Below, in pieces: positions 4,872-64,000 of a DNA stretch of 64,000 nucleotides. The stretch lies in the NCBI RefSeq assembly GCF_000150275.1, contig NW_002060958.1:628272-692271 (forward strand), read 5' to 3'. Every line of letters begins with the position of its first letter. Positions within the stretch are counted from its first letter, which is position 1. The notes beneath the pieces were generated by a model. The model searched no databases and was not told where the DNA came from. It worked only from the letters and a program-made list of their open reading frames with translations. A program made the translations under genes and the position numbers. This stretch comes from Trichoplax adhaerens. Lineage: Eukaryota; Animalia; Placozoa.

Positions 4872-4921
4872 NNNNNNNNNNNNNNNNNNNNNNNNNNNNN
4901 NNNNNNNNNNNNNNNNNNNNN
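4872..4921. other. Assembly gap (50 N)
   Basis: Run of N characters. Confidence 0.99.
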
Positions 4922-43100: not shown

Positions 43101-43500
43101 GAGCCAACGTTCACTTGCTCTAGCTATAGAGAAGGCAATTATCTTGGTTTTAGCGACTACGCCAGGTCCTATTATAATGGGTGCATTTATTGATAGCGCC
43201 TGTAATTTATGGAAAGAAGACTGTGGTGAAAGAAAGTTCTGTTGGATATATGACAGTCATTCCTTGGCATTAGCTATAACTGGTGTTCTTGCAATTATGA
43301 AAGTGTTCTCAACGATCTTTTCCTTTCTAACATATTACTTCATGAAACGTGATATTGAACGATATGAAGTAGGAGATGAACAGACGATTATAAATGAAAA
43401 CTTGAGTAGTGCAAGTAAAGATGATCAATCCTTTCATGAGCATCCTTTACTACAACCTGAAGATATTTCCAATGATTTAGAGAAATCAGTGGTATTTTAA
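40140..43500 (+). CDS. SLCO/OATP family transporter, copy 2 (6 exons, ~702 aa)
   Basis: Exons 40140-40899, 41459-41871, 42093-42247, 42458-42638, 42782-42969, 43089-43500. All introns GT-AG, total 2109 nt in frame. Same OATP motifs. First five coding exons equal copy 1 in length. Confidence 0.93.
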
Positions 43501-44030
43501 GCTTAAAATGCATTATAATTTCGTTTCTATGTGATGGAGTCCACACCATTTGCTATGCATGATTGTGTGACAACCTTATTTTATTCTAAGAATAGATAGG
43601 CTGCATGAAGTAAGCATTTAATGGCGCAATAGATGATATCTGTACGCCTAATAGCGTTATATTAATGCAGCAGAGAATGAATTTAAGATTATAAAATCTT
43701 ACAGTAATCTGTAATACTTAATATGGAATACAGTAATTTTGTTTCATGTTAAAGTCATGGAATAAGTTTATAAGACACTCCCAATGCAGTGCTATATTTT
43801 GTACTAAACATAGTATTCGATAAAACTTCTGTTGCTTCAGTAAGAAATTCGTAAAGGCCTAAAAATTAAAAAAAGCGGTATATAACCATCTAACGTGTCA
43901 TCAAAACTAAGGGGTGCTGTACTCCAGCAATACTGAATAAATGAAGTTCGATAGGTATCAGATCAAGACTTCATAACCTGCTGTTTCTATGTATACAGAT
44001 TCGTAACTACAAATAAAATCAATGGGCGGC

Positions 44031-44707
44031 TGTTACAAAACAGCTTTGCAACAAGATAGCGTAATGCAGGATCAATCAGTCGATTCCCTGAACCACGTAT
44101 CAGGGAGCAGTATCTACTATTTCAGGAACACTTTTCCCATACTAGTAGACTACAAAAAGACTTAGACACCTCGTATCTTACGTTAAACACTAATCATAAG
44201 AACTAACTTTATCATACGATTTATCACATTTATATACTCTTTTACAATAGCAAAGACATCCTAGTTAGTAATATCAACGTTGAAACCTGATAATGAATCA
44301 CAAGCTGATTTTATCTACTGCTACCTAATGAAGACAACAGTATTCACGAACATAGACATCGAATGACTAATACAAAATTGTCGGATTACAATATGTCCTA
44401 TCACGGAACATTCCTACGATAATCTACAATGCACCATAAGTAAATTATAATCACAGTGATTTGAATTATAAGAAGACTAGTGCAAACTCCCGTCGCTTTG
44501 CTGACGGTTAACGATAATGTGCTCATTTAACAGATAGTATTACCATTTGATAGACCGGTCAGAGGTTCAGTAACTTTTTACCGTGTACTTAGACCTGTCA
44601 GAGGTTCAGTAACTTTATACCTTGTATATAAGGGTAAATCAACAAAATTATCCTAACGTAGATGTTTCTACTATAATCTCGATATTACAGTGTATAACAC
44701 TGTAACA
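44031..44707 (-). mobile_element. Solo LTR, family R1, with internal Helitron-like fragment
   Basis: TGTTACA...TGTAACA, collinear with 20694-21332 except 44477-44624. Flanks GCGGC/AATAC do not form a TSD. Confidence 0.85.
44477..44624 (-). mobile_element. Helitron-like 3' fragment nested in R1 LTR
   Basis: Same hairpin plus CTAG-T end as 16589. Internal ~32-bp duplication tagacc(g/t)gtcagaggttcagtaacttt. Confidence 0.7.
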
Positions 44708-45572: not shown

Positions 45573-48500
45573 CTAGTCTTCTACAGTATTGACAAACGTA
45601 ACAAGTTGCATTGAAAGCACGCTAGATTTAGTTACAGCTTGTGATGAGAATGCCGATTTTGATGGCTTGGTCTTTTTGGATAAAAAAGTTCTTTTGAGTA
45701 CTTTAATGCTAGTCAAAGTGTAGAGGAAAGGATTTATAGCAGAATTTAGAGGCAGTGTAAATGTAGCAATAAATTGTAATGTAATTGTGTCAACTTTGCC
45801 TTCTAGTATGAGCCCAGAAATAGTAATATAAAGATACGGTAGCCAAGAAATTAAATCACTTATTAATATTAACGACAAACGTATCGCCAATATTTTGTTA
45901 TCGTTTAGAGATGACTTTCGTATTCCCTTACTACTTTGTTGTACTGCCATGAAGATGCGAGTATATAAGGCAATCATTATTATCCACACTATAACTGTTA
46001 TTGACAAATATGAAATCATCCATGTCGCATTAAATATACCGCGATAATTATTTGGCATGCACATACTATTATAGGCGTAGATCCTAAGATGTCCCGGCTG
46101 ATTTATACTAAACATAACTGGAATGCTAGAGAACGAGATAATTACTAGCCATACCAGTCCAAGAGTGATTCTAGCAACTTTCAGAGATAAATTAGCAGTA
46201 GAGAAAGGATAAGCAATGCAAATAAATCTATCAACACTAATGATAGCCATAATAAGAACCGACATTAGTGTTGATATTATTACTAGAAGGCAAGCGATAT
46301 GACAACCAGGATTCGATAGCCAATTTTCGGAATGTAATCCAAAATCACCATCAGAATAAATTAAATTTGCTATCCCAATAGTTAATAGATAAATAGACAT
46401 AATAAGATCTGATATTGCTAGATTACTTATGAGAAACGTTGGTACAAGATTGCTCTTGATTGACTTTGAATAGTGATTTTGTAATAAAACTATAATGTTC
46501 CCAATTAAAGCTAACGATCCAACTATCCAAACAAAAGCATCCAGAGATGCATGAGCTAATAAATAACTGCAAGACGAAAGGGTATCGGCAAACATACTTG
46601 GTTGGCAAGTCTTAACTTTACCAGGAACCATACAACAAAGATAATCTCGCCCAGATAGCCTAAAACAATAATATCGAATTTTTTGATTGCTTGTATGCCA
46701 AGCTTAGTTGATATTAGTAGTGCTTATGTCTATTTAAACTGATTGAATATTAAATTGAACTTACACCGTAGATAGATCGGGTGGTCCAAAAAAGGATGTC
46801 TGTGTAACGAAAGCTAAGCTATTACCTTGTACGTATCTAAAATAGCAATAGAGTTAATTATGTTAACATGCAAGATAATAGAGTAACTTCGAGTCTACAT
46901 GTTTTATTTTAATTTGCTGCATAAAAATAAGAAAATATTTGTTAACGTATAATTTGTAATAAGAGTGCTTACAAAAATTTTATTCTCAGTAAACCTCTAA
47001 AACACCGGTTATGAATAACGATTATCTCATTATTTCTAATATCCCTACCACGAAAAAATCAGAGACGGTCAGAAATATTACCGGTATTAAAAATCTGCAA
47101 TTTACTTATTAGCTTTTAATTTATTACAAAGTTTCGATGAATGGAAAATAAGTTCCTAGTTTTTGTTCACAAATATTGGAAATTTTGTTATTCGAAATAT
47201 TTCTAAAAGCGATAGTTGAAGATTATAATAATTTAGTACCATATATAAGCAGCTGTCTCAAAACAGCTTTGCAACAAGATAACGTAATGTACGATCAATA
47301 TGTCAATTCTTTGAACCACGTATCAAGCAACGATTTCTGCACTATCTGGAACACTTTTGCTCTACTAGAAGACTACACAAAGACTTAGACGCCTCGTATT
47401 TTAAGTTAAACACTACGTTTCAAAAATTAACTTATTACACGATATATTGTGTTTATATACTCTTCTTCAACAGTTCATGAGTCATAGTTAATACGATTAA
47501 CTTTAGTATCATTCACTGAATTAGACATTAATTTTAGCTACTGCTCTCGAATGTAGACCACAGTATCTACGAACAGAATATCTAATGGCTAATACTGAAT
47601 AGTCAGATTACGATATGTCCTATCACGGAATATTTCTACGATAATTTACAATCTACCATAAGTAAGTTACAATCACTATGATTCGAACTGTAAGTAAATA
47701 CCTCGTATTCCCTAATATAACTATTAATTTAGTATATGTATATATGTCACTGTCATATAAAGTCAGTGCTATATTAAAACACAGTATGTAAAAATTAGAA
47801 GTTAACTAAATAAGGATAGGCTAACAAAATTATCCTAGCATAGATATTTCTACTCTAATACAGTATATAACACCGTCACAGAAGCATTCTAAGCATCGTA
47901 CCTATGGAAAACTAAAGCATAAACTACACTAAATCGTTTAAGTAATTAAATACTGATTCATTTGCCATTAAATTATGAATCACGTTAATTTTTGACACTT
48001 ACAGACTCTTCAACGCATAAAGCTGTAGCTCTGTAGAGAATGTTAGATTGTAGAGTCTATTTCCTGCAATATGGCTTTCAAAAAAACGAAACGGAATAAT
48101 TCATAATTAAATTATTTCTAAGGTTTAATTCAGCGTATACCATAATGATTAATTGTAGGTAATTTAACAGGAGTTTAACTTATCTAGAATTCCTTTGTTG
48201 AATTTTGAAATTTTTAACAAGAGCTAATGCGTAAGCTATTTCGGAATATAGAGAACTTACAGCGCCTCGAGATTCTTGTAACTGTCCGCAGCAAGGTTTG
48301 CAATATCGATTGATCCTAGGTTATTATTGCTGATATCTCTATTGTTATTGTCACGCAATATAATGAATACAATAAGCATGCATATATGCAAAATTTAGCA
48401 TTATAAATTATTGTAACTAGTGCATAAAGTATATGAAGCATTAACATACAAATATTGTAAAGATGAATACAAGCGGAAAGCATTTTGAGGGATGTCAGTA

Positions 48501-51500
48501 ATTGCGCAATTTCTCATTTTGCTGAAATGTAATTATTTTGAAGGTAGTAGTTAATAAGGAGTGTCTCAAGATACTCGGACTTTAAAATTTATAATACGAA
48601 AGTAATTAATAGATATATTTTAGTCTTATAGCCAAAACTATTGATGTTTAGTATTGAATGCGTTACTAATTTTAAAGTGGTAGAATTTTGGTGCAATTGA
48701 TTGCCAGCCAACTCAAAAGGGTGAAGCTTATTCAACTATTTATAGCTTTAATAAAAGTAACTAATTAAAAATTAAGCTACATTTTGCATTCATAGAGCTA
48801 TTTTGGCATAGTAGTCTGTCTTTTCAACTGTCAGCATAAGTACAAGAAATGGGAAATTCTACTATTCATGTCGTTATTCAGGTCAAGCAAAGGATGTAAA
48901 GCTTACAATGCTGTTATGTAAATTACTGTTCGTCTTCTCAGAATTCCTTTGATATTTTGCAGTCTTATAGGATTGTCACTAATATCCCTAGAAGTATTTA
49001 ATAGGAGTATAGATAATATTTTATAGTAGTAATCATCCATTGCCATTTTTTGTTGTGTGCATAGGGATAGATTTACTGTTAAGGATTTCTAATTCAGATC
49101 ACAAAAGAGGTTATAGCTACCGAATGGATATCTTAATTTATTGTTTTACGTAATGGCAAATGGAATCCTTACAGGCTTCGAAAAAAATACGGATCAATAT
49201 CGGTAGATAGTTTCTTAACGTTATTTCCAGCTATGTTTCTATCAAAAAATAAATTTGCGATGATCCAATGGAATTTTGCTTAAAATTTTCAGAGATAATG
49301 TGGACTTACATTTCATATATTGTGTGGAGGTGATTCAAAAGCTTTTTACCAATGTCTACACCATTTTTTATCAAATTGTTGTAACTTGCATTTCTGGAAG
49401 TAAGGGGAATGCAAAAACTGTATTGCTGACCAGTATGATTAATTTTTATTAAAGTACTTTAAGTAACATAGTAATAATACTTACATGTGGCTTAATCTTT
49501 CGAATATTAATTGGCAATTTGATTCGATGTGGGAAATATTATTGTTATCAAAGATACTATAATAGAGTAAAATTTATATTCTTGGATAGCACGTAAAAGT
49601 ATGGGTACATTTTTATCGATTTCTGTAGTGTAAATATATAATTTAAAATATTTTTGCTGAAAGTTTTCAATACTGCTATTCATGATTTTTAAGTTAGGAC
49701 TGATGATATGATATTAAACTATATAAGAAATATTACGAACAAGACACTTAAAGGTGACAGCCCCTCGCAAGAAAGATTGCTAATAATATTGTTTCCAATG
49801 TCTCTGTTTAGAGGTAAAATAATAATTTAAAAGTTCACTTAAGTTTTTTTGCATAATATTTGTTACAGTTTCTGAAATCTATAGCTTACAGGTTTTTTAT
49901 CTTGGTGTGTTTCATATTTCCAATGGCGGATAGACGATTATTACGAATATTTCTAAATAAAAAAAGTTGACTTATTCGCTAACGTATATTTATCTAATAC
50001 TTTTTCCTTTTCCCGTAGGAATTCGGTAATTACAGTAGCAAACCGTATGACAAGAAATCTTATATTTCTTACAGGCTTATTAATTTGGTATTATTAAATC
50101 GTAATGCATTCCATGAATCGATGTGATTACCCTCCAAGGATCTAATATAGACATAAAAATGCAGCTATAATTTCTTAAGTTTTTGTCCACTGTAGTATAG
50201 AAATAGGAGAAACCTAGTAAGCATTTGTTGTATAAAAGTTTCAGAGTAGAAAAAGTCACTTTCGATTTGAATCCATTAGTTAGGATTGTAACATTATTAT
50301 AGTAATAGATTATCATAAAGGCATCGCCATAGTATAATCTACTGCTTACGATTAGTAAGTATGTTCTCGCAGCCCGTTTCAAACAGTATAAAAACTTACA
50401 GATTTGTTAAGGAACTTATTCCATCAAAGGTACTCTTTACCGATCGAATTCGGTTATTGTCTAGATATCTAGACAAATAAGGTGTGATATTTAGTTTTCG
50501 ATGTTACTTACTATTAAAATTTTTGATAGACCTATACACATAAAATATTAGAAGGAATCTTACAGAGTGTTTAATCTAGTATTTGCAAAATAATTTTCCT
50601 CTAAATACTGGATTTTATTGTTACCAAGATACCTAGAATTACGGATTAAAATCAATTCTGTAATTTGGGAATAACGAATCTATTAGCTGCTGATGACTGG
50701 TGTATATTTTAATTTTTACATGCTTACAATTCAGTGAGTAGAGATAAATTTCTGAAATTTTTAAGGTCCAAAACTTGGATATCATTTCCGGCTAGATTTC
50801 TGGTTTTCGTTATTAAGGCAATTAATTATTTTTTATCATTTGTAAGCTACCTTTTTTACTTAATCGTTTACCAGTGTATAGATCATGCGAATCTTTTCGT
50901 AACTATCAACATTTTCAAGGTCTAAAACTTATCTTACACCCAGTAAATATTATGAAAATAAAATTATAAAAATTATAATATTTGTTAGGATTATTCAGAT
51001 AAAATTATTTAGACTTATTCTGGAGATTTTTTACTAATATTGCAGCATCAGTAGTGCATTAAAACTTTAACTGCTTAACAAACCCTATTAGTCTGGCTTA
51101 ATTTAGATGATGTAACATGATATTGTACACGTTTGTGTACGAAGTTCGCTGTATTGGCGAAATGCCTAGTCAGTTCGTAAACGGCAAAAATACCAAAATA
51201 CGTAAATTAGAGAAACCGTCTTCCTTTATAAATCAGAGAAACTATCTTTATTCATGCAGTAATGTTACTAAAAAGACAGAGATTCTCTGTCCTTTTGATG
51301 ATTATAATAATAATAATAATAGATTAATTCAAATAATCAATAATATATATATGAAACTTGCACTAACTGAAGTAATAGCCAAACATTTAGAGCTACTATT
51401 ATCAATTAAGCAGTTATTATTGACCTCATATGCTCTCAAAACATGAAATGATTCAATAAATAGAAATTTTGAAAGCTGTTGATAATCTGCAAATTTTATA

Positions 51501-54500
51501 ATTATCGTTAATTCGCAACGAGCTTAAACGATCAGAAAATATCACCGATTAGTGAATTATAGATATTAGCCGTCGGCTGTGATGGATAAAGTACAATTAG
51601 CCTTTACCGAACTTAATTCTGTGGTACTAGAGAATTAATGCTATTTCAGTTAACTAACTATAGAAACTAGGTACGCTATGCTATGATCGTAAAGATTGGC
51701 GTGAAATTAAGTGATGTTTTTAGCTACTGTATAGATTTCTATTTCTAGTCCTTAATTTCAACATTATCCAATAGTATTGTTACTTGTACGCTATATATTG
51801 ACTATCAGATTTGGTCTTATGTTAATTTATACATTGTTTTAGATTAATGCCACATATATATTTACTTGTTAAAGTAAACGGGCTAGGGTTTGGATTTGTT
51901 ACATAACTATTTAGGATAGAAATATTTAATCTAAATTATATCTACTCGGACTTACAGAAAACTTAGACTTATTAATGGTTGCAAAAAGGTCAAGTCTTTT
52001 AGGTGATTTCCACGTAAGTCTCTATACGTATAAAAATCAAGAGAATTTCAATTTCTTAATTTACTTTAATAAATAATTTCTAAGAACGAAACTAAACATT
52101 TGTAGAAATTTCTATATTGTTTCATTGTCTGTACGTGAATAGGTACTCTTACAGTTTCCTGAGACTTTTTAAATTAGCCATAGTCAGATCATGAACACTA
52201 TTCAAACGATTATTACGTAGAAATCTGAAATTGGAATATTGACGTTAATATATTTTAATAAAGTTCAAAGGCTCATGTTAGTAGATTTATTGTTGTAGAA
52301 TAGGATTCTAAAGAATCATTTAAAAGATAGCAAAACTTACGATGATTTATAGGTATAACTTATCTAGTTAAATATTATTTACATTAGGCAGTGGATAAAT
52401 TAGAATCTCTATACTTACAGTTCTTGCATTTTTATTGGATGATTTAGTGTAACAAAAAAATTTGCATCAATGGTATGATATCTATTCCAACCTAAATGAC
52501 TGATATTCATTGGCAATTTTATTTACCAATTCTAGTAAAATAATTGTTTAAATTGCGATTCTGATACAGGCTGACTTACAGTGATTCTAGCGATGGTACA
52601 CCATTAAAATTGAGCGGAGGGGATTCTTGCAAGTAGTTATGTGTTATTTTCCTATTATTAGTTAGTCGTAGTGTTAGTAATAGGAGACATTCAATAAATA
52701 GATGCTCAATTCATTGACAAGCTTTTAGTAGGTAATACTTTAGACAATTTAATACATATTTAAGATTTCATTTGCAGCTGCTAAAGTATTGCTATAAATT
52801 TATAAATTTTATTTCTAATTAAGCAGATTTATTTGAAAAATAAATTTAGCGTATGCCTTACAAAGTTTTGCAATCGTAAAATTGCAGGTTCGGATTTTCA
52901 CTTATTTGATTATATGATAAATCTCTAAACAATAAAAGTAAATTTAAATGTAGAAATATTGTATTTGTATTCTATAGTATTGTATCGAATATCGTATAAG
53001 TTGCCATCGTTTTATATGTTTGAGAGCATATACTATTATTGCAATTCGCATCATAAATAGTTTTCTGTAATGTACAAAGATTTTAAAACTAGCGTTTTAA
53101 TTATCAGAAGTAGATTTCTCTCCGTGAATTTCATTCTAAACTAAAATTTTATCACCGAAGACAAATGGTAAAAAATGTAATATTTCATTATTTCAAACGT
53201 TCTATCTAAGCCTACAGTTATTGGTACAATTCTAATTATATAAAACTAATATTAAGGTAACTGCGATCCAAAATTTTAATTCTAGGTAAAGTTACGTAAT
53301 TGCATCAGGTTATTAGAATTATTGCTTCCCAGCAAAGTACAAATTTTATTTTTTACCTAATCCCTGTAACACAATGATTAATAGTTTATCCCTAAAATAG
53401 TGACCCAAATTTATACTTATACGATCAAGTTTAACTTACAGCTCGGCAAGCGTTTGGTTTCCATTGAAAATATCAGGACCGCTAAGTCTTCTGATATTTG
53501 TCTTTTCTAATCCTCTGTTAACAAATGTTGCATTTTGAGTAAAATCTGAGGCTTATGATGGACTTTACAGATTTTTGAGTTGCCCCTTAGCTTTTAAAAG
53601 TGCATATCCGTACATTACAGTGTAACTTTCACTAGTAAGCCGTAATATACTGTCAAAAAATAGCTTATCTAGGAATGTAGTAGTGATGATTTATCCATGA
53701 TATTTTACGTAATTTTAATAGAGAATGGCATACCTCAGTACCAAAAATTAATGTTTACTTAGATTTACTATAAATACTGTCGATTTATCAACAGCGTTTA
53801 AGTTCAAATTTGTCTAAAGAGAGACGTATTATTCGCTGTAATTTCCTGAATATAAGAATGTTATTGCTATTTAGAGTCGTACTATAGATAAATAATGAAC
53901 AAAATGGGGCTGATATCAGGCTCGTAAAGTTTAATATTTTCGTTATAAATTTCGGTTTGTAACTATGACATTCCAATGTATTTGTGAATAAGGAATTACT
54001 AGATCTAGTGCTAAATATAACGATCAGAGAAGCGTAGAGGCCGTAAGTTTAATAATATTTAGTATTAATTAACTGATACAAATTAAGCTTAATGCAGGAA
54101 AATAATGGATTTCATAAATTAGGAGCAATATATAAACCTTAAGTTATCTATTTTTGTGTTTTTCAAAGAGATAAAATTTACTTACAAAACGCTTAGTGTA
54201 ACATTTGCCGAAAATATTAAGCCATTGAACCTGGATAAGTGATTTCCTGCTAATTTCCTTAGTATTGTTAGACAATAATTGATTATTACTTTATATAAAA
54301 TACGCTTTAGTCTTTACATGATTTCTAGCTGACAAATTAATACAAATATTTGACTACTCATTTCATCCATTACTATCGTGTATACTGGTACATATTTGCG
54401 CAATATTGTTCTTTAATGAATCTAACGTATCTAATGTGGTCGATTTCTTACAGATCAGATGGTAGTTAATAGCAATGTTAATGATTCTTTGTTGTTTGAA

Positions 54501-57500
54501 CTACTATTCCGAGTGTAGAAGAATTTAAGAAAATATACTATTGAGAGTACTTACAGTGTAGCAAGTTTTGCTAGTTTGGTAAAGGCGACTGGGCTAATTG
54601 TGGATATCTGATTACTTTCTAAAGATCTAAAATTGAGATTTAAGGCACATCTTGATTATAAGATTATTGTTTGATGGAATAGGTTATTAGTTAAGAAAAC
54701 TATGCTAGCTTTAAATTAGGATAGTTCCTAGTGAGATATCAGTATGTATTTCTATCTGTTCCACTTGCTCCTAATTAAGAATCGTAAGGCCTGATAAAAA
54801 TATTGACATTTCTATCTACGAAGCCTATTAATTTTTTAACTAACTGTTGGTGCTATAGGCTTACCAAGAGAACATCTTATTATCCTATCTGATAACTACT
54901 GCTAAACCTTAAACTAAAATCTTATATTACCGCTTTATTGTTTAGAAACGAATGTTAATCGTCTGCCGAGTGCAGCTGTAGTTTGAAATATGATTTACGT
55001 ACACATACAAATATAGCGATTATACGCTAAAGTAGAAGAATTACTAGAATTTGTATTGTTTTACTAAAGTGTTTCACCCAGAATTTAGTCGTAATTTAGT
55101 TAATCATCCATCTGAGATTTCATGAGAAGGTGAACATTTACATTTATAATTAGCGTTTAAAAAAAAGATTGAATAACAGAAATAATATAATTGACTTTAT
55201 ATAAGCGAAATGATAAGATATCCCTACAAGGTATGCAAATCCTTCATTTTCTCAAAATCTTGACTTCCAATAGAGCTGATGATATTCTCGTCTAGTTTTC
55301 TAACAGATTAATTGATGTGATTGAATTACACTTACTTAAAATTTTGTTTTACGAAGGCGGAAGAGCTTAGTATTCAATTCTTTAATGTAGATTTTATAGA
55401 AATTGTAATAAAAAGTATCTAACTAATCTATCTAACAGGAAATAATTTAATTGTCTCTAAAAAAGTTGTCCAAGTCAAGATAAAGTTAAAAGTGATCTTC
55501 ATTACGATGTTCTAAAATACTGTAGAGACAAGAATCTGAAATGAGGTATTCTAAACTGGCATGAAACAGGTTTCTATCATACTCCTTAAATATCCCATTT
55601 TAGCTTAATTTATAACAGTAATGAATTCATCTATAATAATATTTAAATCTGATTCACTAACTTACTCAAATAGATGATATGATCAAAATATTTTACTGTA
55701 TGAATCCTTTTACCTAAGATGTAAATACTCTTGTATTACAATCTAATTACATAAGATTTTGGGCACCACCTGAATTATAGAGTATGACATTATGTTTAAC
55801 GTACACCTTATTTTGCTTAGATGTTCGACTGTAATTGGTAAGTATCATCAACCAATAAGTATAAGAAATCAACACTTTCTAATATTAGCAACCTAATTAT
55901 ATCAGATATTACTTCTAAAATAATCATGCATAGTATGCATCTCTAAAAGTATGCAGTAATATAGTTAAAAATTTAAAATAGATTGAAAACTTACAGCAAC
56001 TGTATAGAAGTTAAATTGTAGAATAAACTTAAATCAAATATTAGATTATCGACCAGTCTCCTAAAGTTACATAAGAAAGGCGTGTTTTAGGAAACAGATT
56101 CGATATACAAAGTTGGTATTGTTGTTTCAACTACTAGCATAATAGTAAGTTTTTAAAATAAGATCGAAGGTTTCGCAAGAAATTTCACAGCAGTAATTTT
56201 AAACTTTCTCGTTGCTTGTAAATACATGACGCCAAGATAAACGTGTTAAATTAAAAAATGACGTGCAGTTTAATAAAATTTTATGAATGATATAAGTGTA
56301 CACATATTATGTATATTCTAGTCATATTTTACATTTCTGGTTCTTTATACATACAGTTCTCGCAAATTTCGCAGATTCCGAAATACATTATCTGAAATGT
56401 TGCTGATACTGTTTGAACTCAAGTGACTAGAGGAAATAAATTATGCGTGGATCAGCTATTAACTATAAATATATGCATTACTTGAGAATTAATTAGTGGA
56501 GAGTCGCATAATATCATTATGGTATATAATCTCTTTTAAATCCTGTCAACATATCAATATAATGATAAACTTCAGAAAACTCTACTTCATTAGCGACTGG
56601 ACGCAATTGATACTATTCTTAAAATACATCGTTATATAAAAGCATCATACTGACTGCTGTAAAAAAATCCACTATTCTGCCAATTTAATAACTTACAGCT
56701 CTTGTAAAATAACAAGATCCTCAAATGCACCGACCATGATGTTGTTTATTTCGTTTAGATTCAGATTTCTAACATGATTTATATTTACATAAATAATAAT
56801 TTGTAGCAATCTCTAAAGGTGATATTCGTAGAGAGCTAAATGCCGTGGTTATTTTTGCTAATGCAATTAAGTAAAGCGACTACTGCTTGGATTTAAATTA
56901 GTCAAATAGCTCTATAGGTAGGCAAAAGTTCATAACAGTACAATAGGTTTTGTGGTTTATCTAAGTTAAAACTGTATTTTTCTTAACAGCTTTACAGCTA
57001 CATTAGAACGAGCTACTATGACCAGATTATATTTGCTAGCATGCATTAATTTCTGCATCGTATTGCAGGCAGGCAAATACTAATTTTGACTTTGCTTGAA
57101 AGTAGAAGTTTGCCCAAATTATACATTTCATACGGCTATTGTAAATTTATTTATAAGGTATCAAAATGATATGAAGGACTTACAGAGTCAGCAATTTTTT
57201 TAAACAACTAAGCATCGATTCTGATATATTTTGCAGTTTGTTTTGATCTAGATATCTAAAAAAATAGACAAGAGTATATTGACGTTTACTCTGGTATTTT
57301 TCATTGATACAGGTGCCTCATTTCTAGGAGTATTGCATATTTGTAGATTCGGTAGTGCGGTATCAAAGTCCAAAGTTATTTATTAAGTATTCTAGATTAT
57401 AACTTACAAACGTTTTAGCTTCAATAGCGTACAAAATGAACGAGGAGCAATATCTTGCATGTTATTATAGCTGAGTTGGCTAAGAAGTGAAAATATGATA

Positions 57501-60500
57501 TACAGAAACTATATTTAGAAAGGTTTTCCACTGTATGTAGTCATAGGTTTACTGTAAGTATCGTGTAATATGATAAGTTTTTATTTCTACCATAGGCGTT
57601 AATAAAATTGTCTGGATACTAAAAAATTGACCAGCATGTTAAAAGACAAGGCTAATGTTTGCTTACAGCTTAAAGAGTTTGCCTAGGCATGCAAAAGTTT
57701 TATTAGTAATCTTAGTCAGTAGATTTCCGGTAAGATCTCTATTAATCAACATATTAGTATCAGCAATGAAAATTAATGAACGAATTAATGAACGAATTAA
57801 TGCATATTGTTACTTTACTATTTCGGTGTTATAACCGAAATTTAAAACGAGGAACTAGAACTATCTAGGCCGACCATGCGATTCAAATTTATTGGCTTAT
57901 GGGCTCTAGGTTATCTATGCTTTAGCTAGTTAGATAATGATTATATAAACAGGGATATAGAAACTAAGCTGTAATTTATGCAAGTATCCGAACATATAAA
58001 TTCATTAGTAAAGTATGATCAGTAAATTCCAGGTAAAACTATCTATAGACAAATACTGTATGTTACGTTTAGAGTATAAAAGTAATTTTATAGCAAGTAA
58101 CTTTAAAAGTAGTTTAGGTTAGCATTTTGTAAAATAAGTGAAATTAACCATAGCAAAGAATCTCACACTTACAATGCAGTTAGGCTCATGGTTTCACAAA
58201 ACGAATTATTTTCTATGTCTTGGATGGCGTTATGACTTAAATTTCTTTAATCATTCAATAAAAGTTGGTTTAGGTAAGTGTTCAGTACAATTATATGCTG
58301 TAAATTAAGGAGACTTGTTCTCCAACAAAATTTCCGTAATCATTTAAACTGAGCACGTGTAGCTGCTACTATCTTTTAGCATTTTCGGATTTTGCATTAA
58401 ATGAGAGCGAATAAAATATGTAATTTCCAACAAGGAAATTTTATTATAAATTTGCTTAATAGGGAATTAGCGTAGGTATTTCGGCTATTGTCTACCTGTC
58501 ACGGTACGAACTACCGTGAAGAAATAGCTATCTAAATTTGGTTAATATAATATAGTGATAATATATTACAACTAGTTACTTAAAATAGGAATTACTCTAA
58601 TTATAAATGTGTTACAGTAAATTTAATGCTGTGCTGTAATGTGCACTGAAATGATTCTGTGAATGGACATATTGTAGTCTGACTGTGAAAAATTAGTTAG
58701 TAGATGTTCTCACCTAAGTATTTTTATAAGATGACTCATGATTGTTAGTTGCTGTAGAAGGGTATATAAACCCATCAGATAGTTGAATAAAGTAGTTCTC
58801 AATTGTCTAGTTGAGTTTAACGAATCAAAGGCGTCTAAATTCTTGTGAGTAGGGATACTGAATCCCGGAGACTACAGTAATTTAGAAATTTATTTTACGT
58901 TATCCTTGTCACGAAGCTGGTTTGTGACACTACCCTAATAAAGAGGTGCCAAGTACATCCGCAGTGTTAATGCACAGTAAGCATTCATAATTCATAACTG
59001 TCTACAGTATAAACAGTAACAATAGCAAATTTAGTTACAATATGACATCAGTCTTCATAAGATACCATTGAATTGGTTTCTAACTAATAATAAAGTATCT
59101 AAATGTAAATGTGGAATTTGAATAGTTATGACGCAAAGATATTACGTAAAGAATGGATCTTGAACACCTAACATTTATTTGGTTGATGATTTACTGTATG
59201 AAAATTAAAAAGTGACGGTTACTACTGAATCGATTTTTAATTAGGTGCATCTTTCTAGTAAAATTTTCGAAACATACCCTAAGTATTAAATTAATTTTTA
59301 TACTCGTATTAATTTATGAAGTTTATCTTACAATTTTTGAAGGTTATTTAAACAATTTAATCCATTTCTGTTAATCTTCCTGAACTTGTTAGAGTCCAAA
59401 TCTCTATAGTCCAATGGAGTGTTAGCAAGAAATACCAATAATTTGTAAGTAACATTCGTAACTTTGGAAAGCCTTATAAACTTATCAATTAACAGTGTAG
59501 TGCCAAGTCAGGGATTTCTCTAAGCAAATTTATGAACCCCAAAATCTTTCATAATGTTAAGGTTAATCAATTTTACTACTTTTGTATTTAGCGACTTCAC
59601 ATTTATGAAGTAACCTTAATTTTGAAGCTCACAACGCTAACTTGACTGGCTTGCTTTCATTGCAATTAGCAATTTTTAGTAAAAATAGCAAAGTCTGGAG
59701 TCTATTATTTTCACTTACAGAAGGGAAAGTGAAGGCATGTCGCAAAATGCCGATGGCGCTATTTCTTTGATTAAATTCTGGCTTAAAATCCTGTGTACGA
59801 GATATTATAGATTTTTTAATTTGGTTTCTTATAGGAAAGATAGTAAAGGTTACACTAGAAAATTCTCCTTCTCTACACTTAATTTATCCTTTAATTTAGT
59901 GGTTACTAGTAGAATTAAATTACGACCATAAATATTAATGGAACTTTCAGAACGTTATTTTATATTAAATCGCTTTATAAAAGATACTTTCGTATTAAAT
60001 TTTTGAATAAAGATTGCCGAAATAGATAATTTTAAGTCATCATACACGAAAGTATCAAAACATAAAATTATGGATACTGTTTAAATTATGTTGAGAATAA
60101 TACATAGAATTCATTCTCTATCATTATCTAAATTTGATTAATTCTATTTTAGATATAATCATTATACTGTAACATTTCAAATGCTAACAGAATTAAATAG
60201 TATCAAACAGGCTGAAGATCGGTGCAAATGAAGCTTACAGGCGATCAGTTTTCGGGAGACAATGAAAAGAATATTTATCAATTTTAGTGAGAAGATTCCG
60301 GTCGAGATGTCTAATTTCCTCAGAAATAAATTATTTTTCAAAGAATATGACGTACTAATATTAGCAATCTTTTGAGTCATTAATGTTATTATTTAAATGT
60401 AACTTACAATGCTTGTAAATTGGTTGCGCCACAAAAAGCTCTTGCTTCAATATCTTCTATATCATTTTTCCTTAAATATCTGTAAAAATTCAATACGTCG

Positions 60501-63232
60501 TAGTGATAATCGAATTAAAGATGGTCGAACTAAATTACCAAAAGATTTAATAGGTGATGGATAGACTCTAGACTGAAAAATTCATAAAAATTTAGAAAAC
60601 TTCTTTAAATATTTGACGGAAAAGGAGTACTGTAGCTACTCCGATCGATCTAGGATGTCATAACATATCGGCTACAATAACACGCAGCTACAGGTAATAC
60701 TATACAACTGTAAGTAGATGATAGCTATTGCAAATTTCTCCGGAATAGTATGCTGTGCAATCCACTTGTGTGCTACAGTTAACGAGATGAGTCTTCCTGT
60801 TAGCTGTTAAGCAAAATGCGCATGCTATCCTAATCTAGCTATAGTATCAATTTAAGAAACGTTAGTGAAATTACTAAAGTTGTTCAGTACGTTTTGCCGT
60901 TAACGAATGAATTTAAGGAAAACTAGAATAGGTGCAATGACAGATAGCACCTTATACACAAATTAGAGCTATCTTGTGAGATAATGTGGCCTCTAATTTA
61001 GAAGAAGAGACTTTAAACATGACTATGTGTACGATTAATGCTATTGATAATATTAGTTTCAGACTACAGCAGACATAAATTTTCTTATCATAAATATCCT
61101 GGTGATGTTGCTATCAATTATGAATTAATATACTGTTGTTTGACTAATGAAGTAACATAATATAAGGAATAAATGTTTTGATATCTTACTGAATTTTTAG
61201 CTTACAAAGTGCTTAGTGTCTTAAGGCAGCTTATAGATCCTCTAGTAAGATTGGTAATGTGATTTCCTGATAAAACCCTAAAATGAAACATTTTAGGTTA
61301 ACAAATTATAAAACTGGCGCTAATTTCCAAAGTTTATATAAAATTAAAAATTTATTTATTGCCTATACGGAGAAGCATTACGCATCCTCCTTTAGCTCTA
61401 ACATGATGCAACTAGAAAAATTTTAGAAACAATTGCTATTTCCTGCTTCAATATGTTTCTTAGTCTTTGCAACTTGTTAGGCACTACTGGATAATACTCG
61501 TATTTTACGAGTTCATCAACTATTGGCAGTATTATATGTACACATTTCGGCAGATCTCTTCAATTTCTAGCAGAACAGCCACGGCATTTATGCAAATACA
61601 CTATTTTCTGGCTATAGAACTGAAAATTTCTTAACCAAAAATATGAGCTACACTTGTTTACTTATCATCACTATTTATGGTAACTCACAGCGACACTGAT
61701 TGTAATCAACGACATTCTAGCAAATCATTGTAATTCTTTAAGAATTATAATCTGTAAGAAACGTAATGCTAAATATAGCCGATAATCTATAATTCAAATT
61801 AGCTATACCATATATTAGTAGTATTGTGATAAAATCCGATCTTGAAAATTCCAAAGTTGTAGAATATTAGAACTTTATTAGATCTAATACAAAGACTAGC
61901 TACACACAGCCATACTCTAGCCGAGTACAACTACTCTAAAAGACTTTTAGAAAGAACAATCAGATAATCTAATGTCTTATGCATTTATGCTCTCTGTAGT
62001 CTTCGCAGCTACAATCAGCATAGAAGCATTCTACCATATTCTACGTATATTCAGCTTAATACTAGTCACAATATTTTACAGCGATCCATCATTCATCCAA
62101 TATAGAAATGATTACAGCATTTTCATAGACATTATTCTTACCACTCAAAGTACGATGAACGAAGCATTTCCTAATATATGAATTACAATTCTATTTCTAC
62201 CTCTACCTCTAACCTTATTAGTAGCTAAACACCTTACTGTATATAATCATCTGTATTCTAGCATAGAGTCTGTTCTTACAGTCTATAATTATGGGCTACT
62301 AAGTATATCATAAGATAAATATAGAAAAGACACTACCGTATATCGTACTAAACATGGCTAATAGTCTACAATCACAATACTAACTTATTTTACAAGTACT
62401 GACTGATGTTATTTGGTTAACTAGTACTTTGATATTTGCAGGTGCACAATAAAGGATAAATTATAAATTATAAGGGCTAAAGTGATACTGAAAGGTACTT
62501 ACAGAAGTTGAAGTTTTCCTAAGCTGCAAAATGACGACGAATCAATCTCTTGTAATCGATTGTTCGATATATGCCTATGAATTAGTGACAAGGTAACTTA
62601 GACTTGGTTTTTAGGAAAGTATTTCCGTAAAGTACCCGTATGCGGTGTTGTTTTATTTTCTATCTCTAGAGTATTTGATTTAAAAGTCAATGCAGGCGAA
62701 GTAATTGTTATAACATATGTAGCTTTGCATAGTTATTAGATATTCAATTAAATATTGTGATTTTCTACGCTGTTTCTACGAATTACCAAATTCGACCAAA
62801 CGTGATAAACCGTATGGCTATGAGATATCATAAGTTGCTATACACTTCTAACGGAATTGAAGGAAAATAGTAAAATTGTTTCCGTTACAGCATATCGCTG
62901 ATAAAAAGTATATTTAACGAATCCCCAGTCATACTGGATAAAACAGACTACCATGTCATCTAAAGTAAAGTTTCAATTTATAAATTTACCGGCTGCTCTA
63001 ATTACTTTGTCAATCCAAAAAATTATGCTAATTCTACTTATTTTTTCCATCCTATTGAAATTTTAATGAAATCTAATCGATAAAACTGAGATTGTTTATA
63101 TGAATTTAACCATAAAGATATTTCTGAATTGCTAGAATAGCGTACTATCGCGCCACTTACAGGTATTTTATGCCGCATCCGTCTCCGAAAACGTTCGACT
63201 TCAAATTTCTGAGAGCATTACTTGATAAGCGT
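45573..63232 (-). CDS. Leucine-rich repeat-containing GPCR (LGR; type C-like hinge and 7TM) with at least 37 LRR exons; 5' end probably outside window
   Basis: Terminal exon 45573-46659 encodes hinge DYLCC-MVPGKVKTCQP...LSSCSYLL and 7TM (NLAISDL, SVDRF, ISWLP, LPLNSAINPFLY). Phase-2 AG/GT-bounded LRR exons: 46765-46836, 46973-47044, 48003-48074, 48261-48338, 48907-48987, 49173-49238, 49310-49393, 49485-49556, 49741-49803, 49890-49952, 50073-50141, 50400-50468, 50564-50632, 50728-50799, 51956-52021, 52153-52224, 52419-52499, 52580-52651, 52862-52924, 53440-53514, 54186-54257, 54555-54626, 55228-55299, 55995-56060, 56355-56426, 56697-56768, 57184-57255, 57408-57479, 57667-57738, 58173-58244, 59332-59403, 59719-59790, 60239-60310, 60408-60479, 61206-61277, 62503-62574, 63161-63232. 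Possible extra exons 53569-53649 and 55751-55828. Each is a multiple of 3, stop-free and fits or approximates xLxxNxIxxIxxxxFxxLxxLxxL. Confidence 0.88.
47254..47880 (-). mobile_element. Solo LTR, family R1, in LGR intron
   Basis: TGTCTCA...CGTCACA, flanks GCAGC/GAAGC (one mismatch), collinear with other R1 copies. Confidence 0.8.
58497..58929 (+). mobile_element. Solo LTR, diverged relative of R1, in LGR intron
   Basis: TGTCAC...GTGACA with perfect TSD CTACC. TATATAAA at ~58763 and AATAAA at 58786. Blocks such as ggacatattgtagtctgac match the reverse complement of R1. Confidence 0.8.
61825..62376. mobile_element. Interspersed repeat family R2, copy 2, in LGR intron
   Basis: Collinear with 11742-12275. 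Inverted termini extend to TAGTATTGTGAT/ATCACAATACTA (61819-62382). Confidence 0.8.
61972..62181 (+). CDS. Putative repeat-encoded small hydrophobic protein (69 aa)
   Basis: ATG-to-TGA ORF whose frame is kept without indels in two other diverged R2 copies, with many synonymous differences. Confidence 0.35.
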   Translation: MSYAFMLSVVFAATISIEAFYHILRIFSLILVTIFYSDPSFIQYRNDYSIFIDIILTTQSTMNEAFPNI

Positions 63233-63824: not shown

Positions 63825-64000
63825 TATTACCGTGTTATACACTGCAATATACACTGTAATATCGAGATTATAGTAGAAACATCTACGTTAGGATAATTTT
63901 GTTGATTTACCCTTATATGAAGAGTTACTAATTTAGATATGTGATATTTAAATATAGCACTAGCTTTTATGGTGATATATATTAACATATACAGCCTACT
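63825..64000 (+). mobile_element. R1 LTR, truncated by window end
   Basis: Reverse complement of the R1 end at 44625-44707 and 21180-21332 (acactgtaatatcgagattatagtagaaacatctacgttaggataattttgttgatttaccc). Confidence 0.85.

Follow-up and report, generated by a model that had tools for sequence, protein, structure and literature searches.

A predicted LGR gene of Trichoplax adhaerens with 44 one-exon leucine-rich repeats joined to a single seven-transmembrane exon

The stretch of DNA analyzed here, referred to as the window, comprises 64,000 nucleotides of the Trichoplax adhaerens genome (contig NW_002060958.1, positions 628,272 to 692,271) with a G+C content of ~30%, and its minus strand carries the public locus TRIADDRAFT_60575. 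The locus is very probably a single protein-coding gene for a G-protein-coupled receptor of the leucine-rich repeat type (LGR) carrying a full array of 44 leucine-rich repeats (LRRs). The new model consists of 47 coding exons with a total of 4434 nt (a multiple of 3) spread over 23.5 kb and encodes 1477 aa, arranged from 5' to 3' so that the exons for the signal peptide and the LRRNT cap come first, followed by 44 exons of one LRR each and a last exon composed of the hinge, the seven-transmembrane (7TM) domain and the tail. About 1,115 aa are encoded 5' of the last exon and the ectodomain reaches ~1,150 aa, far above canonical LGRs and larger than the ~880 aa or more proposed by a first-pass annotation made from the letters of the window. 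Inside the window lie 38 LRR exons (46765-63232) and the 7TM exon; coordinates above 64000 extend the window numbering along the same contig and are termed window-equivalent. The single-gene model is preferred because the public models, a tandem paralogue, the constraint seen between Trichoplax strains H1 and H2, the emptiness of the long introns and the word content of RNA sequencing run X4 all agree.

Two public models cover parts of the gene. The H1 model P0088 (XP_002116616.1, 740 aa) is assembled from exons of TRIADDRAFT_60575, and for Trichoplax sp. H2 the orthologue is covered by model P0001 (RDD37320.1, 1062 aa), which is named "G-protein coupled receptor GRL101-like protein" and begins at 61277. 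The two models come from different pipelines, and each carries LRR exons on into the 7TM exon. Both are truncated and lack internal exons, with 10 exons present in neither. The annotation is thus corrected from 740 and 1062 aa to most likely 1477 aa with a signal peptide, an N-terminal cap and 44 LRRs. The sole long open reading frame (ORF) at the locus is 45573-46631 on the minus strand; an ORF track misses nearly all of the gene, as had been pointed out at the first pass. Protein-level searches were made with single exons and with P0001 and P0088 as proxies for the joined protein.

Exon plan of the repeat array and its 5' end

A plain LxxLxLxxNxL pattern applied to the six-frame translations gave no enrichment because the introns split the LRR motif, meaning that a splice-aware profile is needed. 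A profile of 23 columns was made from 15 candidate exons and was followed by splice-aware scans. In the window the profile matches 20 times on the minus strand and never on the plus strand; 19 of the matches fall within 46975-63231, the remaining one being at threshold and outside this interval. Each of the 19 is flush with splice sites: AG and a single base stand before it, and two bases and a GTAAG-like donor after it. All of the LRR exons are stop-free, bounded by AG and GT, and in phase 2, with one base of the split codon at the start and two at the end. Their lengths range from 63 to 84 nt, with 72 nt in 29 of the 44 across the whole gene. Introns fall between the second and third bases of the codon for the first Leu in each repeat. 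The codons restored at the junctions specify this opening Leu of the LRR motif, with Phe or Ile in a few cases. The reading frame is continuous over all 46 exon junctions. The first-pass annotation had listed 37 well supported and two possible one-LRR exons of this kind, within one of the 38 found, and its proposal that they run in frame into an LGR hinge and 7TM domain is upheld. Scanning of the long introns for further exons found none that are convincing. In the public models Pfam identifies LRR_8 with E values of 1e-77 to 1e-87 together with 7tm_1, and the LRRs are of the common 24-residue type. An AlphaFold2 prediction of the H2 model P0001 made without an alignment has a mean pLDDT of 33.5 and is unusable for the shape of the ectodomain, for which a superhelix had been proposed at the first pass.

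The array had been expected at the first pass to continue past 64000, and it does so. The same LRR profile gives six further LRR exons in window-equivalent 64604-68420, numbered 6 to 1 in the direction away from the window (64604-64675, 65090-65161, 65248-65319, 67197-67268, 67437-67508 and 68349-68420). Beyond these, the open piece 68636-68788 bears the cysteine arrangement C-x3-C-x-C-x6-C followed by "..TQVP", a pattern of LRR N-terminal caps, and the LRRNT exon is placed at 68637-68754. In frame upstream of 69028, a Met leads into a run of hydrophobic residues, forming a predicted signal peptide with the ATG at 69100 and a GTAAG donor after 69028, which defines the signal-peptide exon as 69028-69100. 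LRRNT-like cysteine patterns are also present at 62028 and 47895; these are chance matches within open pieces of 23 aa.

RNA sequencing contigs were mapped on window-equivalent 63901-69900. A single 658-nt contig from run X4 links the six LRR exons, the LRRNT exon and 35 nt from 69028, and its loose end of 73 nt corresponds to exon 63161-63232 (LRR exon 7, 72 nt), the most 5' exon within the window. The contig therefore joins the nine most 5' exons via eight introns, each of which reads CT..AC on the plus strand and so GT..AG on the strand of the gene. Over this run of eight junctions every predicted exon is included, and skipped forms are absent. Splicing leads from the signal-peptide exon directly into the LRRNT exon; neither LDLa nor any further module lies between the cap and the signal peptide in which the LRR array terminates. 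Run X4 additionally contains 23% of the sampled words of 45573-51500, approximately the yield estimated from the exons alone. In the same mapped interval, runs X5, X6 and X10 gave only repeat-derived contigs with no exon joins. When the 7TM exon was searched against RNA-derived protein fragments, the matches were to paralogues only, with no fragment of TRIADDRAFT_60575.

Tandem paralogue, strain comparison and alternative readings

A tandem paralogue, TRIADDRAFT_60578, lies ~40 kb upstream with an identical exon plan consisting of a 7TM exon at window-equivalent 86231-87340, LRR exons at 87582-116877 and an LRRNT motif at ~118021. Its exons can be paired in colinear order with 40 of the 44 LRR exons of TRIADDRAFT_60575, and the odd lengths (63, 66, 75, 78 and 81 nt) occur at the same places. 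The colinear chain scores 79.8 compared with 32.8 +/- 3.2 for shuffled exon order. The two tandem copies are 58% identical in the 7TM domain and 40% identical in the LRR exons, and within the repeats the scaffold positions are 75% identical, the concave-face positions 22% and other positions 26%.

The paralogue is itself equally oversized and badly under-annotated, being annotated at only 505 aa with ~43 LRR exons present. A signal-peptide-like open piece is found at 118339-118491, within the stretch that holds this gene, window-equivalent 86231-118500 (contig ~714500-746800).

Between H1 and H2 the exons of TRIADDRAFT_60575 differ at 0.36% of positions and the introns at 1.04% (Fisher p 7e-6), with 0.29% for the LRR exons alone. 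Of the 15 differences within exons, 10 are synonymous. In the H2 assembly (contig NOWV01000252.1, L009:1-2945) the signal peptide, LRRNT and first LRR exon are present twice with 20-N gaps between them. Compared exon by exon, identity to H1 is 100% for one copy and 94-97% for the second. The doubled 5' unit may reflect two alleles that were placed in tandem by the scaffolding. The X4 contig has four differences from H1, all in the LRRNT exon, which would fit the divergent H2 copy.

A further regularity is seen in the distal array, where LRR 2-5 and 8-17 each have a single Cys whose place shifts back and forth, from one exon to the next, between exon-peptide positions 16 and 17 (types a and b). 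Read from the 5' end the pattern is -abab--ababababab, followed by none in the 27 proximal repeats. The alternation spans window 57184-63232 and window-equivalent 64604-67508, and the same is found in the paralogue at 105454-116207. Exons two apart are more alike than neighbors (identity of 0.32 compared with 0.23), which together with the alternating cysteines indicates a two-repeat super-repeat in this part of the array. The alternating cysteines might pair between neighboring repeats as inter-repeat disulfides, and the alternation is a detail not met in the published descriptions known to us.

The LRR exons of the window were identified by differing combinations of the profile, the splice-aware scans and comparison with the public models and the paralogue. 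All of these agree for a set of 72-nt exons comprising LRR exons 43 (46973-47044), 35 (49485-49556), 25 (52580-52651), 22 (54186-54257) and 18 (56697-56768), and also, with the cysteine pattern in addition, exons 17 (57184-57255, type b), 16 (57408-57479, type a), 15 (57667-57738, type b), 14 (58173-58244, type a), 12 (59719-59790, type a), 10 (60408-60479, type a) and 9 (61206-61277, type b). The 72-nt exon 8 (62503-62574, type a) was found by the profile and the scans and is present in the H1 model, and exon 29 (50728-50799, 72 nt) was found in the same way with support from the public-model comparison. Exons found in neither public model and matched in the paralogue include the 72-nt exons 39 (48450-48521), 19 (56355-56426) and 13 (59332-59403, type b), which are detected by both the profile and the scans, and the 72-nt exons 41 (48003-48074) and 11 (60239-60310, type b), which are detected by the scans; exons 13 and 11 are required for the a/b alternation. 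Exon 42 (47128-47202, 75 nt) likewise is detected by the scan and is in neither model, and 16 of its 24 aa are identical to paralogue 88019-88093.

The remaining exons are detected by the splice-aware scans unless stated. The hinge-proximal exon 44 (46765-46836, 72 nt) is present in both public models and matches 87582-87653 of the paralogue. Public-model and paralogue comparison both support exons 32 (50073-50141, 69 nt), 30 (50564-50632, 69 nt), 27 (52153-52224, 72 nt) and 21 (54555-54626, 72 nt), and public-model comparison supports exons 37 (49173-49238, 66 nt) and 31 (50400-50468, 69 nt). For a group of exons of irregular length the public-model comparison is accompanied by a paralogue exon of the same length, these being exons 40 (48261-48338, 78 nt), 38 (48907-48987, 81 nt), 34 (49741-49803, 63 nt), 28 (51956-52021, 66 nt), 24 (52862-52924, 63 nt) and 23 (53440-53514, 75 nt, with 11 of 24 aa identical). 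Exon 36 (49310-49393, 84 nt) is also supported by the public-model comparison, and exon 20 (55995-56060, 66 nt) is in the H1 model and has a paralogue exon likewise of 66 nt. Exon 33 (49890-49952, 63 nt) is in the H2 model with no partner found in the paralogue, and exon 26 (52419-52499, 81 nt), which is irregular, is present in the H2 model and has a weak paralogue match.

Several points weigh against the single-gene, 44-LRR model. The LRRNT match to Pfam is under the cut-off with an E value of 0.043, and exon 19 has three H1/H2 differences in its 72 nt. Reading frames, the two public predictions, the paralogue and constraint are the basis for the proposed link between the distal exons and the 7TM exon. 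P0088 and P0001 skip different exons, so that some exon skipping may occur in vivo.

This last point leads to the alternative that survives best, although it is improbable, in which the gene is real and the 44-LRR form is one of several products, with shorter isoforms possibly dominating. All LRR exons are symmetric (2/2) and every junction restores Leu, which means that exon skipping yields in-frame shorter receptors, and the design would permit length variants in this way; for any neighbors joined the junction codon is Leu, Phe or Ile. The disagreement between two independent public models and the start of the H2 model at 61277 can be read in the same sense. However, gene predictors commonly miss 72-nt exons, the X4 contig has every predicted exon over eight junctions, and both the a/b cysteine alternation and the colinearity of the paralogue require exons that the public models skip.

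It is less probable still that decaying pseudo-exons derived from exon duplication make up part of the array, leaving a working receptor of fewer than 44 LRRs. Weak LRR motifs and irregular lengths (63-84 nt) mark several of the proximal exons, and four exons of TRIADDRAFT_60575 are unpaired in the automated paralogue chain. The open frame, splice sites and phase are nevertheless intact in 44 of 44, and the irregular 84-nt exon 49310-49393 has a counterpart of the same length in the paralogue at 90714-90797. Retention of irregular lengths at ~40% aa identity between the copies needs long-term selection, and the low H1/H2 divergence of the LRR exons relative to the introns also argues against decay.

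The least credible alternative is a pair of genes, in which an LRR-only protein, secreted or membrane-bound, would be encoded upstream and an LGR of fewer LRRs downstream. The break would fall in, for example, 53515-54185 or 54627-55994, gaps of 0.7-1.4 kb that exceed most introns at the locus. But these gaps show no terminal exon that is plausible, no signal peptide and no LRRNT motif, real LRRNT-type cysteine motifs occur only at 68740 and, in the paralogue, at 118021, the paralogue exon order is unchanged across the candidate breaks, both public models bridge them, and 53515-54185 is without AATAAA. No sign of a break was seen near 53700-54100, the interval named at the first pass as an example of where a poly(A) site would point to separate genes.

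The hinge and 7TM exon and the surrounding sequence

The last coding exon (45573-46659, minus strand, with the stop codon at 45573-45575 and an acceptor AG before 46659) encodes a short cysteine-containing hinge, the 7TM domain and a C-terminal tail. It matches Pfam 7tm_1 with an E value of 1.4e-28 over profile positions 1-260 of 260. The exon opens with the hinge YLCC..C.P..SSC of ~30 residues, which aligns to the hinge of RXFP1, and the 7TM domain keeps the DRF, SWLP and NPxxY motifs together with the cysteines of transmembrane helix 3 and extracellular loop 2. Compared with solved structures, the hinge and 7TM domain score 126 bits with RXFP1 (7tmw), 99 with TSHR, 85-86 with LHCGR/FSHR and 40 with LGR4, making RXFP the nearest among the LGR types by bit score. 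A Pfam search of P0001 and P0088 gave no LDLa and no TIR domain. The product of TRIADDRAFT_60575 is not a type C LGR because it has neither the LDLa module nor an ectodomain of ~10 LRRs.

The closest relatives of the 7TM domain are Trichoplax paralogues with 40-62% identity, and a search of the species' own genome (an assembly of 105.6 Mb in 1414 contigs) shows that it holds at least 55 intact single-exon 7TM paralogues. The locus belongs to a placozoan-specific LGR expansion. Under the usual LGR mechanism, the long LRR solenoid would capture an extracellular ligand and relay the signal across the RXFP-like hinge into the 7TM core, which has intact DRF and NPxxY motifs and would couple to G proteins.

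That the giant LGRs are environmental or microbial pattern sensors of the placozoan, not hormone receptors, is a doubtful though not far-fetched proposal. The family is large, tandemly clustered and lineage-specific, with diverged residues on the LRR surface and a conserved scaffold and 7TM domain, all of which favor such a role. Trichoplax is an animal without neurons, and the ligands of its ~50 oversized LGRs are a question worth testing. The sensor proposal, and with it the first-pass comparison to a pattern-recognition receptor fused to a GPCR, is kept open because placozoans are reported to be without true TLRs and to have C-type-lectin domains coupled to GPCRs (Kamm et al. 2019, PMC6321704).

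Two OATP genes (SLCO-type organic anion transporters) on the opposite strand adjoin the receptor gene at its 3' end and are located at window 43144-43500 (+) and downstream and, in the H2 contig, at L009:28028-35839. Between the two LGR genes, plus-strand open pieces at window-equivalent 80427-82504 have kringle-like and SRCR-like cysteine patterns, and their matches are to N-terminal regions of GPCR-like proteins of very large size in other animals. The introns and flank contain multi-copy repeats, including an element of ~450 bp found on both sides of the gene (44030-44476 and window-equivalent 64032-64484). A dispersed element of ~134 bp at window 63849-63982, with at least 40 copies that are 88-96% identical on many contigs, is probably a miniature inverted-repeat transposable element or a short interspersed nuclear element. 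Two intronic stretches, one of them window-equivalent 66260-66806, have very deep contigs from several RNA runs with many loose ends and are transposable-element-like. The assembly has a gap of 50 N at window 4872-4921.

Relation to described LRR receptors

The predicted receptor has one of the longest LRR ectodomains joined to a GPCR, and the analysis adds a complete exon-level model, evidence for the retention of ~44 exons by two neighboring copies since their duplication, and a two-repeat cysteine pattern that could steer structural studies. The novelty suggested at the first pass does not stand, since many-LRR LGRs of Trichoplax were published in 2022. Hauser, Koch and Grimmelikhuijzen re-annotated T. 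adhaerens with 46 LGRs, 41 of them Trichoplax-specific, and described the latter as having an "unusually high number" of LRRs, with Tadh-LGR-15 drawn with 34 (PMC9545775). The same work gives LRR counts of 7-9 for types A and C and 14-18 for type B, a long hinge for type A, and no type B LGR in Trichoplax. It gives no exon structures or per-gene full-length models, and its TriadITZ (CoGe) identifiers are not matched to this locus. Judged by its predicted features, the receptor fits the Trichoplax-specific clade of PMC9545775 in species, long LRR array, a short cysteine hinge of its own, a rhodopsin-type 7TM domain and the lack of LDLa, and differs from Tadh-LGR-15 in having 44 LRRs compared with 34.

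Each of the other LGR types shares a part of this arrangement. In vertebrate glycoprotein hormone receptor genes each LRR is carried by a small exon with phase-2 introns, and the hinge and 7TM domain are in the last exon; the plan of TRIADDRAFT_60575 is the same. The 7TM domain is also clearly related to those of the type A receptors FSHR, LHCGR and TSHR (86-99 bits), whereas the 44 LRRs and the hinge of ~30 residues are unlike the 7-9 LRRs and long hinge of that type. With type C (RXFP1/2 and molluscan GRL101) the similarity extends further, as the RXFP1 alignment continues through the C..C.P..SS..LL hinge and the H2 orthologue is named GRL101-like, although the LDLa module is missing and 44 LRRs are present compared with about 9-10. 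LGR4-6 of type B likewise combine an LRR ectodomain with a 7TM domain, but have 14-18 LRRs and a weak 7TM match (40 bits).

The best non-placozoan matches of the LRR part are to chaoptin, artichoke and Toll/TLR proteins (E values of 1e-73 to 1e-42 with 24-30% identity), which have comparable repeat numbers. These proteins are without a 7TM domain and TRIADDRAFT_60575 is without TIR, indicating that the likeness is one of repeat type, not of orthology. Unlike the Toll-like pattern-recognition receptors, in which a TIR domain follows a single transmembrane helix, the C-terminal part here is a 7TM GPCR. The class of oversized LGRs is already on record as a peculiarity of placozoans, and TRIADDRAFT_60575 opens no new category; it extends a described family by a longer member that is now resolved in full.

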